A DNA stretch of 64,000 nucleotides from Vitrella brassicaformis CCMP3155 (Eukaryota; Protista; Chromerida): NCBI GenBank assembly GCA_001179505.1, contig CDMY01000407.1:21386-85385 (forward strand), read 5' to 3'. The position numbers and the translations under genes were made by a program. Under the pieces are notes generated by a model, which saw only the letters and a program-made list of their open reading frames with translations, had not been told where the DNA came from and did not search any database. The stretch's first letter is position 1; each line of letters starts with the position of its first letter. Below are positions 24,999 through 33,021 of the stretch, in pieces.

Positions 24999-27062
24999 CT
25001 ACGCGTCGATCTGCTTGGCCTCGTCGTGCATCTCGCCGTGCATGGTGGTGGCGAGGTGTGCCTTGAGCTGTTTGATGAGCGGGAGAGGGCTCCGGTTGGA
25101 CTTCTTCATGTCGGTGATGGTCTCGATGGCCGTCCGGGCGAAGTCGGCGTCCTCGTGAGCTATCCTGTCCAGTCTCCTGTTGCGCATGAGACACAGACAC
25201 CATGTTAGTGTCAATCCATGTGTGTACGAGCCTTGCAGATCAGATAGACTCCACTCCCACTCACTTCTGCATGCTGGCACGCTCATCGTCTTTCGCTTTC
25301 TGAACAGCGGCACAACACAAACAAGACAGACAACTGCCCTTCCTGCTGTGCTGACGGGCGACACACGGCAATCAGTCAATACAAGCGAGACCCACCTTAC
25401 CTGGACTTCCCAGGCCTTCAGCTCTGCCAGCTGTCGGTTGAATGCGGCGAGGTCCTGCAGCTCCTTGAACCGCCGTCTCCGGTCCTCGTCGTCCCGCTCG
25501 CACATGGCACTGAACGACGAGTGCCAGTGCTGCAACATCCGCTGATCCTCCGCTCTCCGCGCCTCCTCGTTCGCCTGGGCAAAGGACAAGGAAGAGAAGA
25601 GCAAGTCTCTTCCCTGGTTTGTTACAGGCACACTGTGTGTGTGTGTGTGTGTGTCTGTGTGTCTGTGTGTCTGTGTGTCTGTGTGTCTGTGTGTGTGTGT
25701 GTGTGTGTTGGCTGCCTTTTTCATGGCGAGTTGCTGTGCTCTGTGCTCTTCGATCATCTGTCTCTGCAGGCGGGCCTGCTCCTCTTTGGCCATGAATTTG
25801 GCGTCCTCCTTGGCCTTGAACTCTGCTGCCTGATCGTTTGATGAATGAGAGAAAGAGGGGATGTTTTGGCTTGTTAGTTTCGTCCTCACCTCCCTCTCAG
25901 CTCTTGTCTCGTCAGCCTCATGAATGGCCTGCAGCAGTCTGGCCTGTTCGTCGATCATCCTCTGCCTGGTGGCCAGCTTGGCGTTGAAGATCTCCTCGGA
26001 CCTCTTCTGCATCTTCTCCTGCATCTCCTCCTTCCGCTTGGCCCAGCCGGAGATGGCGGCGTCCTGCTCGGCCTCCACCTGACGCTCGCGCTGCTTGAGC
26101 TCCTCAAAGTACTTGTTGGACTTGACCGTCTCTTCCAAGGTTTTCTGCGCCATCTCGCGGCGCTTGACCTCGGCGGTGCGCTCGGCGATGATGTCCTCCT
26201 CGGCCTTCTTCTTGAGCATCTCGCCCTGGAGGATCTCATCCTGGATCTCTTGCAGACGCCTGCGCTTCATTTCTTCCAGCTGCTCGGCGCGCTCCTTCTG
26301 TGTCTCGGACACCTTCTTCTCCCGCTCTAGGGACTCGGCAACCTCCCTCTCAAGCGCTCGGCGATACGCCTGCAGCGCATACACAACAAATTGATGGTCA
26401 TGTGTGTTGCCTGCATGCCGTCTGTCATCGACCTGCTGTTCTTGCTCGAGGTGGAAGGCCTCCCTTTGTTTCTCGAGCGCACCGAGCTCCTCCTTGAGCG
26501 TTCGCTCCTCCTCCCAGTCAGTGTGGATGTCTGTGAGCATGGCGTTGCCCTGGAAAGCCCTGAAGTGCTCGCCGTGCTGCCGAGACAGCTCCAGGGCCCG
26601 GCCGATGGCCTTCTTCTTGAGCTCCTTCTGGTAGGCAGCCTCCTCGTTGTCCACCGCCTTTGCAAACCAACCCATTACAGACAGACAGACACCGTGCTGC
26701 TCGTGCTCCCTGGGCATGATTGGCTCGTAACACGTGTGTGCTGAGTGTGCTGACCTGCTTGGCTGCCTCCTCGTCTGCCAGGCGCTTCTTTCGCATCTCT
26801 ATCTTCAGTCTTCGCGCACCTGAAAATAGAGGAAGGAACGAAGGCATATTGAAGGGCCCCTGGCCATTTGGCGATGGTTCGGCTCACCCTGCAGCGTGTT
26901 TGACCACCGCGAGGCCCTCTCCTGCGACTTTTTGTGGAGTGCGAGGCGGTCTTCGGTGCCGTCGTCCTTGCTGTCCTCAGCAAGGGACGAACGGGCCCTC
27001 ATTTTCTCCAGCTCACTGGCGCATATCACCATCTGTGTGTTTGCAGCTTTGAGCTCCGCCAT
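24999..27062 (-). CDS. CFAP210: Cilia/flagella coiled-coil protein, CFAP210/CCDC173-like
   Basis: LHKKSQERASRWSNTLQGARRLK (cf. recalled CCDC173 LHEMSQEVVKHWTNTYAG), KELKKKAIGRA...FRAFQGNAML, long E/K/R/Q coiled coil. Multi-exon. Confidence 0.75.
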
Positions 27063-27353
27063 TTCACGACGCGGGACGGCTGCCCCCGCGAGCTTAGCCG
27101 CGAGATGTGGGGGTGCCCCCTTCGTGGTGCACGTCCGGAGACGGAGGTGTCGGCCATTGCTCCGCCGTCGGTCGGTGCCTTGCCCAGATCTGAGGCTGGG
27201 AGAAGAGGAGGGAAGTTTACGTCCTCAGGAGATCATTCGCCGTGAAACCGTTACTCGTCGAGATCTGTGCATTTTCAAGGCAGGGAGGTCAAGGACGCAC
27301 AGACTGTCGACTGGTCGCCTCGCAGCTCAGCGGTGACTTTCTGAGGTCTGGAA

Positions 27354-28556
27354 ATGAAGGCAGTCTGTGCGGTGCTGGCGTGCCTTTTGTCCGCCGCCGT
27401 GGCGGACCGATCTGCTTTCGTCCCTGCACTCAATGTCAGAAGGTAGGTAACGCATGAATCAGAGGCGGTATCCATCTGTGTGTCCAGTCAATAATCACAT
27501 TCGTGATGGCATGGTTTGTCACGGGTGCTGCAGGTCGACGAGTGTCCCACGGCCCTCTGAGCAGCTCAGAATGTCCGCCAGCGACAGCGAGGGGTCCAAT
27601 GCGCTCCTCGAGAGAGCCGGCAAGGTGCTGGGACCCGCCCTTGCTGCAGGAGCGCTCGGTGGCCTGATGGCCACGCAGCCAGCCGAGGCAGCTCCTGAGC
27701 GCCTTGTGCCATGCGCCGAGAGCAAGAAATTCGCCGCCAAGATGAAGGCGCAGGCAAGCAGACCACCACACTCGGCATTTGGTTGTGGCGTTGTTCACTG
27801 CAATGTGTGTCATCGTGATTCAGGAGAAGGGTCTTGAGGCTCGTCTGAAGAAGTACACGCCCGAGTCGCAGGGCGCGGCGCTGCTCAACGGCAGGCTGGA
27901 GGAGACCAAGACGCGCGCAGAGCGGTACAAGGCATCAAACCTCCTCTGCGGAAAGGTGGGTGGCTGTTGATTGACAATAATGAATGTGCTGTGTGTGGTT
28001 TTCAATCACTCGTCGGCTTCTATGTGTATCACGACGTGTGTGGTTCATTCAGGACGGTCTGCCCCATTTGATTGTGGACGTGAGGGGTCAGCATGCGGGT
28101 GAGTTCGCCGCCCCGGGTCTGCTCTTCCTTTACATTGCCGGCTGGATCGGCTGGGCGGGCCGCTCATACCTCAACGGTGTGCAGCTCGCCAGCAGCAACC
28201 CTGAGAGCAAGGAAATCGTCCTCGACCTGCCTTTCGCTCTCCAGGTGCGATGCATTACCAACACAAACAGCATCACACGCGAAAGCGCCTATGTGTCTGT
28301 GTGACTGCACTGTGTATGGTGTGGTGTGCAGGTGATGACTCGTTCGGCCACATGGCCATTCCAGGCTTTCGACGAGGCGTTCGGCAAGGGCGAGACGCCC
28401 GTGCCTTCGACGAACTTCGACAACGCGCCCAACTACATCAGGTTCCTCGGTGTGTCGTCAGTGGCACTGACCATCTGGATGTCCCTCACCGCCGCCATGC
28501 TCATCCTCCTCAACAAGGCCTACCCAGGACTGCTCTTCTTCCCTGACCGTAAGTGA
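27354..28556 (+). CDS. psaF: Nucleus-encoded photosystem I subunit PsaF with C-terminal fused PsaJ-like peptide; 5 exons
   Basis: Signal peptide [21 protein letters not shown] transit start and thylakoid peptide ending AEA. PsaF motifs [59 protein letters not shown]. Then [37 protein letters not shown] (PsaJ pattern). Confidence 0.95.
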
Positions 28557-30603
28557 CCATCGACCCATGCATCCATCAGTGATTCGATTGATGTGTGCAC
28601 ACCCAATGACGGTTTTGCTGTCGCCTTGTGTGTCTCTGGTGTGTGCAGTGAGCACCGACCTCTTCTCCCCTTTCTCTGGGAAGTAATCAAGCAAGCCGGC
28701 ACTACTGGGTGGGTGGGGCAGGCAGCATCTGAGGCGGCGCCGTTAGAGTGTGTGCTGACTCTCGATCTGGCAGCCAGTGCACTCCCTGACGGCTACGCAG
28801 CTGAGGCTGTCTTTCTCGCCCGTCCTTGGCCACAAGTGTTGCTTGCCGTCTTAGCGCCGTGTCATTTGACGTGTAGAGAGGAGGACAAGACGCGGCCTGG
28901 GGCGTGATCGATGTCATGTGATGTGACGTTGGATGGATGAGTGAGTAGTTTGGGCTTTCTTGGTTGGTGTGGTGCATGCATGCTTGGATGCATCGGCTGA
29001 CCGACAGACAGACACCCATGTGCAATACCATCTCTGTCGAATTTTTGTCTGTGGTGTCTGTGGCTGGCCTTACAGCCAAACGGTCGGTCACCGCAGGAAT
29101 GCAGCCACTCATCGACAGTACACACGGACGCATTGGGCTTCCGTTTGTGGGCTTTGAGCCTATTCTGCAAGCGGTGCTCAATGCTCCTTCTGACGGAAGA
29201 CTCGAATCACTACTCAGCACCGAAGGTGGTCCAAACAACGGTCTCTCTACCAGCCATCATCTGGCTCTTACACAACAAAGTGCAGCCCGCGATTGATTGT
29301 CCACCAGACATCGATCGCCACACACAGATACCCAGCTGCAGCCAGAGACACGGACTGCAGCCATACACATGCCAAGCAAAGAATCGACAGACGAGACGAG
29401 GCTTTTGCTGCTGCTGCATCATGTTCTGACCTGCACACCCACCACAGACAGCAGAGCAGTCACACATGTCTGTCTGTCTGTCTGTCTGTCTGTCGGGTGT
29501 TGCATGCCTTTCCCGCCTCCCTCGCTGACCATAGGCACCATAACGGAGGGAGAGCGTGACAGATCTGTAGGCAGAACAACAGACGTACGTATGATGCGTC
29601 GACACATCCTGCATGCCTTTCTTCTCTCTCGCCAGCCAGGCAGGCGAAGCTGGCGTGGCCTGCGCCAGCTCCTGGCCACCACATGTGCATGCGCGTCTGT
29701 CTGCATATATCAGGCATGCTACAAACACATTCTTCTGCACGGTGTGTGCACATACTATCCCCCGTACGGTACGCCCTCTGCATGTCGTGGGGGGACTTCT
29801 CCAGCCACTGCGCATCAGCGGATGAATCTCATTCCGATTCAAAGGCCGACGCCACCGACACCTCCACCGTCTCTCGATAGCACCAAAAACGACCGCGCAA
29901 TGGCTGATGCCATCTGGATGTGCGTGTGGTGCTTGGGGCGGACACGTGTGCTGAGGGGCAGCCCCGCAGGCAGCCAGACAGGTCGACCTGAGCGAGGGTC
30001 GATGGGAGACAGAGAGAGAGTGCTGTGGGTGTGGCTGTGGGTGTCATGGCTGTGTTGTGAGTGTTTTGTGTGTCGCGTACCTGAGGTATGTCGTCCTCAT
30101 GGACCCATCTGATGCCCCATCCTCACTCGGCAACCCGATAGATCGCCAGACACTCACCACGACCAGCATGCTTCCACCACCCTACATACACACACACACG
30201 CACACACACACACACACACAGGGACCGATGAACCAATCAATGACCACAGCAATGGCTGCTGTGTGCTGACCAGCTGGCGGCAGTTTGCGACGAGAAGACA
30301 GGCGGTGAAGGCAGCAGAAGACAAAACACACAAGGCCTGCCTGCCTTTATGTATGCGGCAGTGGACGCGAGAAACACAGGCACATTGATTGCAGACAGTC
30401 AGACACACATGGGCAGGTAGGGTACACGCTCCCATGCATCGCATCGCATCGCATCGCATCGCATCGATTGTCAATCCATCACATCGATCGCACCGGAACT
30501 CACATAGCTATGTTTTCCCAACTCATGATACATGGATGCATGGAGTGCAGTGTAAAGTCACACCACCGATAGATACAACTGAATAAACCCCGCCGGCCAG
30601 ACC

Positions 30604-31499: not shown

Positions 31500-32129
31500 T
31501 TTGTTCGTTCACTCTCCCTCGAGCTTCTCTGTCGCAGCGCTGCTCACCATGAATGCCTGCAGCTTGGCCAGCCCTGGATGGGAGGACGGGAAGAGGATAG
31601 AGCCAATCATCCGCGTGGACAGTCGGGTGGCGCAATCGACTGTTGCAATCGTTTACACGAAGCATGGCAATTGACTTGAGCAAGCATCCGCGTGAGTGCG
31701 CGTGCGCGTGCGCGTGCGCGAGTGCGTGTGTGTGCAGCCAAAGAAGTGCGTTTCGGAAACATTCGAATAACATGCCCTACATTCTACAGCTGTGTCCACG
31801 CATGCAGACAAGGAAAGTGAACATGTAAGGACACACCTTGTAAGTGAGTAAGTAATGGTGGGCGCATGACTCTTCCCCCGCTACGGCCACCATTATGCAA
31901 AATGCCATGGGTGAATGCGTATCTAATAGATAACGTCAATGAATTATCGGCTTGGCATACATCGCGGGTGTCTGGCAAAGGGACGCCATCGTGACTGACG
32001 GAAAAACACCCAAAAACACGCACGTACACGCGCGCATTGCCCGTCCCCTCTTCACAAATAGTGCAACAGCGACACGGCACCCGTCCCACCCTGCCCCGCC
32101 CCGTCGGCTGGTCGTGTGTGCATCAATCA

Positions 32130-33021
32130 CTATGCCCCTCTCTCCTCCGACTGCAAACATCACGCACACAGAGCCGTGAGGGCGAGGCCACCCACGGTGC
32201 TTCATGTGGATCCTGATATGCTCACGTACCTGGCCGGCCCCTCTGATTTGATCAGGTACGTTGAGCTGTCCGCCGTCCTTGCCCAAGGCGGCGAGCACAA
32301 TCATGATGACGATAGTGAGGCAGATGAGCCCGCACAGCATCTGGATGCACCGGTCCGACACGGCGTTGCGGGCGATGGTCCGCATGGTGGCCTTGGCGCG
32401 TGTCAGGTTGTTCTCGATGTCGTGCATCTGGTCGTGGATGCGCGCCATCTGGTCCGTCTGCTGATCCAGCCGCTGGACCACCTGCTGACCCACCTGCTCA
32501 GCGTCACCTGAACCAAACCAAACCGGACATTTAAATGAGTGTTGTGAGTGCTGTGTGCTATCTATCTGCCTCGTGTGCTGTGCAAATCAATCCGCACCGA
32601 TCATCCGCTTCGTGCGGTCGAGTGACTGCTGTGTCTTGTCCTGCACCCTGTCGCCCGTGTCGATGATCTGCTGGGCGTTCATCTGGTCCACGTCTATGAC
32701 CTCCTCCCCCACATCCACAGCGCCGCCCGTGAGCTGCTCCCGGTCCAGCTCGTTCTTCTTCCACTCCAACTGGTTGAGCAGCATCTTGAAGTCCCGCATC
32801 CGCTCGTCCAGGTTGGCCTTGTGCTGCCGGGCGTCCTCTGGTGCCAGGCTGCGCATCTCCAGCTGGTAGGCCTCGCGCGCCGTGCGGACCTGCTGGGCGA
32901 TGAAGTCGCAGTCCTGGATGCGGGACCGACGCTGGCTCTTGTCCGCCTGCGATACGCTCTCGATGGCATCACGCAGCTCGTCCAGGAGCTTCAACAGCTC
33001 CCGGGACTGGCCTTCCGCCAT
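32130..33021 (-). CDS. Qb-SNARE (Vti1/NPSN-like), 3 exons
   Basis: N-terminal Habc-like helices, SNARE heptads (AEQVGQQVVQRLDQQTDQMARIHDQMHDIENNLTRA) and C-terminal TM CIQMLCGLICLTIVIMIVLAAL. Confidence 0.88.

Follow-up and report, generated by a model that had tools for sequence, protein, structure and literature searches.

In cyanobacteria and in red-lineage plastids, the photosystem I (PSI) subunits PsaF and PsaJ are encoded by the canonical psaF-psaJ pair, with the first gene closed by its own stop codon and the second opened by its own start. Both subunits are found in one PSI polypeptide in the cyanophage-type PsaJF (PDB 4L6V chain F, 125 aa, designated 'Fusion protein of Photosystem I subunit III and subunit IX'), a fusion of viral/cyanobacterial origin in which J occupies positions 6-41 and F positions 44-91, with the join on the lumenal side. 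In Symbiodinium, a dinoflagellate of a related alveolate line whose plastid is of red origin, PsaJ bears extra N-terminal sequence and is a separate PSI subunit (PMC12830998). In Chromera velia PSI, an extension at the PsaF C-terminus occupies the place of PsaJ and was read as a psaF-psaJ gene fusion with reference to the adjacency of psaF and psaJ in cyanobacteria and a red alga (PMC12830998, Nat Commun 2025), and a preprint describes an extended Chromera velia PsaF that spans the membrane from stroma to lumen in place of canonical PsaJ (bioRxiv 10.1101/2025.07.05.663305); in both of these independent cryo-EM studies, the extension was modelled as part of PsaF. Previously, psaJ had been scored as absent in Chromera and Vitrella (Sobotka et al., 2017; PMC5643376), and the absence of a separate psaJ from the plastid genome is taken here from that study; the suspicion raised in the initial annotation, that PsaJ could be mis-scored as lost in this lineage, is borne out by this scoring. 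As far as can be seen, the correction of the psaJ 'loss' is published for Chromera alone: Vitrella is not mentioned in the preprint, and in the searchable text of the literature, where two papers name Vitrella together with PsaF, the passages seen to link Vitrella with psaJ score it as absent and no Vitrella fusion is mentioned.

The gene of Vitrella brassicaformis has the two domains of the canonical pair in the same order, but in one frame of a spliced nuclear gene. Like PsaJF, it brings both subunits together in one polypeptide, but PsaF comes first, i.e. the reverse of the phage-type order as the initial annotation rightly had it, the join is predicted on the stromal instead of the lumenal side, and the gene is nuclear with introns and targeting signals. 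Its PsaJ is fused to PsaF, unlike that of Symbiodinium, whose PSI (8JJR) contributed no chain to the PDB matches of this tail up to E 1. With Chromera velia (PDB 9HYU chain F), it has in common a nuclear PsaF, the F-to-J order and a single polypeptide; the Chromera fusion is known from a cryo-EM structure, whereas that of Vitrella is known from sequence and transcripts. The tail, which the initial annotation proposed to look for in relatives, has a counterpart in Chromera velia; Symbiodinium keeps a separate PsaJ. The best PDB matches to the Vitrella protein are ordinary PsaF and PsaJ chains. The reading put forward here, with a probability of about 90%, is that Vitrella psaF-psaJ is a real, expressed nuclear fusion gene, the product of which most likely gives PSI both subunits as one chain. 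The idea of such a fusion is not new, the same kind having been described in Chromera velia in 2025, and the gain is modest since the phenomenon is published and both domain labels are already on the public Vitrella protein.

Gene structure, transcription and 3' end

The window is the whole stretch of DNA that was analysed, i.e. 64,000 nucleotides from V. brassicaformis CCMP3155 (contig CDMY01000407.1, positions 21,386 to 85,385 of the forward strand), and coordinates are counted from its first letter. From three-frame reading, splice signals and RNA contigs, psaF-psaJ is a six-exon nuclear gene on the + strand, with a CDS at 27354-28686 and introns of 91, 70, 97, 87 and 100 nt. When public runs were searched by sampled words, two RNA data sets from one study contained 59% of these words, approximately the exonic share, and DNA runs contained all of them; several environmental metatranscriptomes also matched. 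Four runs were compared with 27100-29300, namely the culture RNA runs X1 and X2, the sediment metatranscriptome X3 and the DNA run X8. The features are as follows:

27279-27353, + strand: 5' UTR of the psaF-psaJ transcript; RNA contigs start at 27285 (X1) and 27279 (X2)
27354-27442, + strand: exon 1, aa 1-30, with the start codon, the hydrophobic signal peptide and the start of the transit region; joint 27442/27534 in X1 and X2, hydropathy peak at aa 1-26
27443-27533, + strand: intron 1, 91 nt, GT..AG, spliced out in the X1 and X2 RNA contigs
27534-27753, + strand: exon 2, aa 30-103, with the remaining presequence, the hydrophobic lumen-targeting stretch ending AEA and the putative start of mature PsaF; RNA contigs X1, X2 and X3, Pfam PsaF match from aa 74
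27754-27823, + strand: intron 2, 70 nt, GC..AG with a non-canonical donor; 70-nt skip in X1, X2 and X3
27824-27955, + strand: exon 3, aa 104-147, PsaF lumenal domain; PF02507 33.2 bits, model 42-84, RNA contigs
27956-28052, + strand: intron 3, 97 nt, GT..AG, from RNA contigs
28053-28244, + strand: exon 4, aa 148-211, PsaF core and transmembrane helix; PF02507 91 bits, model 85-146, hydropathy peak at aa 165-183
28245-28331, + strand: intron 4, 87 nt, GT..AG, from RNA contigs
28332-28548, + strand: exon 5, aa 212-284, PsaF C-terminal helix, linker and PsaJ helix together; unbroken in RNA contigs X1, X2 and X3
28431-28547, + strand: PsaJ domain within exon 5, aa 245-283; Pfam match at aa 248-279 (28440-28535), hydropathy peak at aa 247-281
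28549-28648, + strand: intron 5, 100 nt, GTAAGT..CAG; skipped in X1, X2 and the metatranscriptome X3, present in the DNA run X8
28649-28686, + strand: coding part of exon 6, aa 284-295, LSTDLFSPFSGK; codons 28649-28683, stop TAA 28684-28686, RNA contigs
28687-29053, + strand: 3' UTR; RNA contigs end at 29005 (X2) and 29053 (X1)

No ATG occurs in the 5' UTR stretch upstream of 27354. At intron 2, the RNA joint has a positional ambiguity of 4 nt within which no GT..AG placement is possible, and the intron is read as GC..AG because this is the sole accepted splice-site pair in that range. Besides the fifth intron, the four further ones, implied without being listed in the initial annotation, are confirmed by RNA.

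The core of that annotation stands. The residues it quoted are present at their places, the PsaF end (from 28332) passes through the linker into PsaJ without any stop or intron, and the continuity of the transcript over the F-J junction, for which RNA reads were wanted, is seen in the contigs of X1, X2 and X3, all unbroken through exon 5. An artefact of assembly or of gene calling, by which two neighbouring genes would have been read as one, has nothing in its favour and is refuted as an explanation: beyond the uninterrupted DNA, in each of the culture runs X1 and X2 one RNA contig (1324 and 1283 nt) reaches from the start codon into the 3' UTR (roughly 27280 to 29005-29053) and lacks all five introns, the second and fifth joints are found independently in the unrelated environmental RNA run X3, and the whole unspliced stretch lies within one contig of the DNA run X8.

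The end of the gene had to be moved. It had been placed at the stop codon 28554-28556 (ending in RK, CDS 27354-28556), but the fifth joint (28548/28649, GT..AG) has zero positional ambiguity in X1, X2 and X3, and since it is used in all three RNA runs, this stop is intronic and does not end the gene. The protein C-terminus is ...FFPD|LSTDLFSPFSGK and not ...FFPDRK, the full ending being ...FFPDLSTDLFSPFSGK and the total length 295 aa. A minor form retaining intron 5 may exist, as contigs hide rare variants, and the PsaJ domain is complete with either ending. In a HMMER search of the whole library, the spliced 295-aa model was letter-for-letter identical to the public protein P0001 of V. brassicaformis CCMP3155, to which the precomputed labels PF01701 and PF02507 are already attached; in other words, public databases already have the fused model with its exon 6, as an unnamed or automatically named product. 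What is available now is a gene model corrected for its final exon and, for proteomics, a specific junction peptide. In PMC5643376, Vitrella PsaF had been undetected by mass spectrometry.

Near-identical spliced transcripts were also present in sediment and marine metatranscriptomes (X3, and also X4-X7), which indicates that a Vitrella-like alga was transcriptionally active in those samples. The X3 transcript covers 27560-27861 and 28347-28674, with a single difference from the window, C>T at 27672.

The PsaF and PsaJ domains

With curated Pfam gathering cut-offs of 22.4 bits for PF01701 (PSI_PsaJ) and 27 bits for PF02507 (PSI_PsaF), both families are recovered above threshold in the Vitrella protein. 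The whole protein scores 181.5 bits against PF02507 (aa 74-228, model 11-163 of 172) and 30.9 bits against PF01701 (aa 248-279, model 6-37 of 37), and the 41 residues from 28431 taken alone (28431-28553) reach 36.7 bits against the latter (E 5.9e-9, model 5-37 of 37), so that the profile searches proposed in the initial annotation uphold its identification of the C-terminal stretch as PsaJ. Regarding PsaF, the invariant columns C8, C63, D66-L71 and the helix residues Y92/G95/I97/G98 are all present in alignment A1, and the Vitrella protein keeps the Cys pair and the GWIGW helix that characterise PsaF. Exon 4 matched PsaF chains of the PDB down to E 6.7e-23, and Foldseek with the AlphaFold model retrieved PsaF chains at E 2e-13.

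For the tail, a phmmer search against all PDB chains returned dozens of PsaJ chains (best E 6e-7), with 38-43% identity to those of cryptophytes and cyanobacteria. Hydropathy and AlphaFold give one transmembrane helix in the PsaJ part, after which comes the lumenal motif typical of PsaJ, and this non-helical motif, N-[KR]-x-[FY]-P-x-L-L-F-x-P, is kept in the tail, where it aligns with NRFFPDLLFHP and NRFFPDMLYFP of PsaJ chains. These data bear on the possibility that the tail is merely a hydrophobic extension of PsaF resembling PsaJ by convergence, without descent from psaJ. Transmembrane helices can indeed score against each other by composition alone, and the Chromera tail reaches just 18.3 bits, below the Pfam cut-off. 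The Vitrella tail, however, lies 8-14 bits over the curated cut-off along nearly the whole model, the motif it has in common with PsaJ chains (NKxYPxLLFxP) lies outside the helix, and in ancestral genomes psaJ is precisely the gene directly after psaF, all of which makes convergence very improbable and argues for descent of the tail from psaJ.

Two positions depart from the PsaJ chains, namely a Leu where these carry Glu (IEFNR) and a Phe where they carry His (LFHP). The Glu and His are chlorophyll ligands in the Thermosynechococcus structure, though they may not be a defining feature of PsaJ; with both replaced, pigment binding or content at the PsaJ site may differ in Vitrella.

Searches for further fused proteins gave little. 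With exon 5 as the query of HMMER against the whole library, the gene's own protein was the only match besides P0002 and P0003, which were rejected as PsaJ relatives, their matches being of composition or short motifs in repeat-rich proteins. P0002 (1025 aa) and P0003 (636 aa) matched via short repeats (LAVTIWLGTW, and a second motif in at least 7 copies), and P0003, its units flanked by KR, resembles a secreted repeat protein. In a full-length search, the best 120 of 1243 matches were PsaF-only proteins, the query itself aside. A word-index search recovered only the protein itself when the tail was taken as a region of the whole protein, and nothing with the tail alone; this search needs shared 5-residue words and says little on distant fusions, the Chromera chain itself being missed by it.

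Relation to Chromera velia and origin of the fusion

Residues 200-284 of the Vitrella protein align collinearly with residues 217-299 of the Chromera chain (9hyu_F), from the end of PsaF over the linker into the helix (E 5.5e-11, 44.9 bits, identity about 40%). Both chains have the linker motif VPxxxFDxxP and FFPD, the latter at the exon 5/6 boundary in Vitrella. They differ in that the linker is 4 residues shorter in Vitrella, in that Chromera has a 6-residue deletion where Vitrella keeps the LNKAYP turn, and in that about 12 residues follow FFPD in Vitrella vs. about 27 in Chromera (326-aa chain). Judged from these alignments and from the PF01701 scores, above the 22.4-bit cut-off in Vitrella and under it in Chromera, the PsaJ domain of Vitrella is much better conserved than that of Chromera, and nearly canonical. 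With this better-preserved copy, the gene-fusion reading stands on much firmer ground than with the similarity of roughly 30% quoted for Chromera, and Vitrella offers the clearest sequence evidence for the psaJ descent of the Chromera PsaF extension, as it passes the family threshold when Chromera does not.

The ancestral gene order was surveyed in metagenome contigs scanned with aa 150-295 and ranked by tblastn score, from which 80 psaF loci were fetched. In 79 of them, the psaF stop is followed on the same strand, after a spacer of 9-105 nt (mostly 30-39 nt), by a psaJ-like ORF, and in the remaining one (L074) psaJ also lies directly after psaF but in another frame; psaJ is thus directly downstream in 80/80 loci, in keeping with the statement of the initial annotation that F-to-J follows the cyanobacterial psaF-psaJ order. 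The sharing of one frame by psaF and psaJ in 79/80 loci was discarded as an artefact of locus ranking, because tblastn ranking favours in-frame pairs, a bias which the out-of-frame L074 reveals. Given this adjacency, one lost stop or a small deletion would be enough for a fusion, and the presence of both parts in the single exon 5 of Vitrella fits a fusion of adjacent genes.

With regard to PsaL, a PsaL-like frame follows psaJ in the cyanobacterium-like L074 (1280-2600, 43% GC), and psaL lies next to psaF in Chromera (Cvel_23764/23765) according to PMC5643376. Among the long ORFs scanned around Vitrella psaF-psaJ, a scan which small exons could escape, there was no PsaL match.

As to the route taken, neighbouring psaF and psaJ genes of the plastid would most likely have been joined into one frame a single time, ahead of the split between Chromera and Vitrella. 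The linker motif common to both algae argues for one fusion before their split and, within the chromerids, for an event that is old and happened once; the aligned chains likewise suggest a single ancestral fusion. Once joined to PsaF, PsaJ would have had no need of targeting signals of its own, and its entry into the nucleus by means of those of PsaF is plausible. Vitrella may thereby provide an example of a tiny, very hydrophobic plastid-encoded subunit that turned nuclear as the passenger of a neighbour equipped with import signals. More specifically, we lean somewhat, though with little more than even confidence, towards one fusion in the Chromera/Vitrella ancestor having been the exit route of psaJ from the plastid, in which case Vitrella would be near-ancestral, its PsaJ canonical and hardly any linker added, and Chromera degraded. 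Should this single origin be true, no better evidence than Vitrella would exist for the chromerid PsaF extension being psaJ. The ancestor that both algae share would stand close to where the line leading to apicomplexans begins. More speculatively, the long N-terminal extension of dinoflagellate PsaJ could be a remnant of the same fusion.

Predicted topology of the fused chain and neighbouring features

The first 26 residues of the protein are hydrophobic and signal-peptide-like, and are followed by a Ser/Arg/Pro-rich stretch and then by a hydrophobic stretch ending AEA, after which the segment aligns with the mature PsaF start in 30 homologues. From this alignment (A1), the start of mature PsaF would be placed in exon 2, directly after AEA, and the presequence would be three-part, as is to be expected of a protein that faces the lumen in a complex plastid. 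The 295-aa precursor, with its putative ER signal peptide, transit region and lumen-targeting stretch, would be imported and cleaved to a mature protein of about 23 kDa (predicted: 213 aa, 23.3 kDa). The N-terminal domain of PsaF would then reside in the lumen and the PsaF helix (aa 165-183) would cross to the stroma; some 12-18 stromal residues would come next, possibly just PsaF's own C-terminal tail, and the PsaJ helix (about aa 247-275 from hydropathy and AlphaFold) would lead back across to the lumen, ending in a lumenal tail of 12 residues encoded by exon 6.

In alignment A1, the 18 residues of the 'linker' lie opposite the ordinary C-terminal tail of PsaF homologues (...GxLxxxxxxITVSPR), and, although the similarity in that tail is weak, there may be practically no extra spacer before PsaJ residue 3-4. 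Such a small spacer agrees with the Pfam coordinates, the PsaF model reaching position 163 of 172 at aa 228 and the PsaJ model starting at position 6 at aa 248.

The AlphaFold monomer of the mature protein (mean pLDDT 76.7) has the PsaF fold and a helical tail at aa 249-274, with pLDDT 62-76 in the tail helix and below 50 in the linker. Among PDB chains, only 9hyu_F of Chromera gives a structural alignment with this model of about 203 columns, at an rmsd of 8.8 A and with a TM-score no better than those of PsaF-only chains, and the tail helix of the monomer is not placed as in 9HYU, so that the packing of the tail is not supported by this modelling, in which the linker has pLDDT below 50. By homology with the Chromera velia PSI chain, the tail would be expected in the canonical PsaJ site beside PsaF, covalently attached to it.

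A low pLDDT in the linker, predicted as disordered, would also be compatible, without being direct evidence, with a precursor cut in the linker after import, i.e. with a fused gene that delivers separate PsaF and PsaJ to PSI in the manner of a polyprotein. Dinoflagellates and Euglena do have plastid polyproteins encoded in the nucleus. Such a cleavage nevertheless appears unlikely in Vitrella, given that the homologous Chromera extension was modelled within PsaF by two independent cryo-EM studies, that the linker is short and partly conserved between both algae, and that it may equal the normal C-terminal tail of PsaF. Incorporation of both subunits as one stable chain is what we infer. In either case the gene itself is fused, and the subunit catalogue of Vitrella is to be corrected: psaJ is hidden inside psaF and not lost.

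Around the gene, two further features can be mentioned. A 572-aa open frame lies directly upstream of psaF-psaJ on the minus strand (24999-26717), with no Pfam match at E up to 0.01. At 31936-33018, also on the minus strand, two ORF pieces come near the v-SNARE families (V-SNARE_C 24.2 bits, V-SNARE N-terminus 22.7 bits, both just under the Pfam cut-offs) and are probably parts of a Vti1-like SNARE gene split by an intron.
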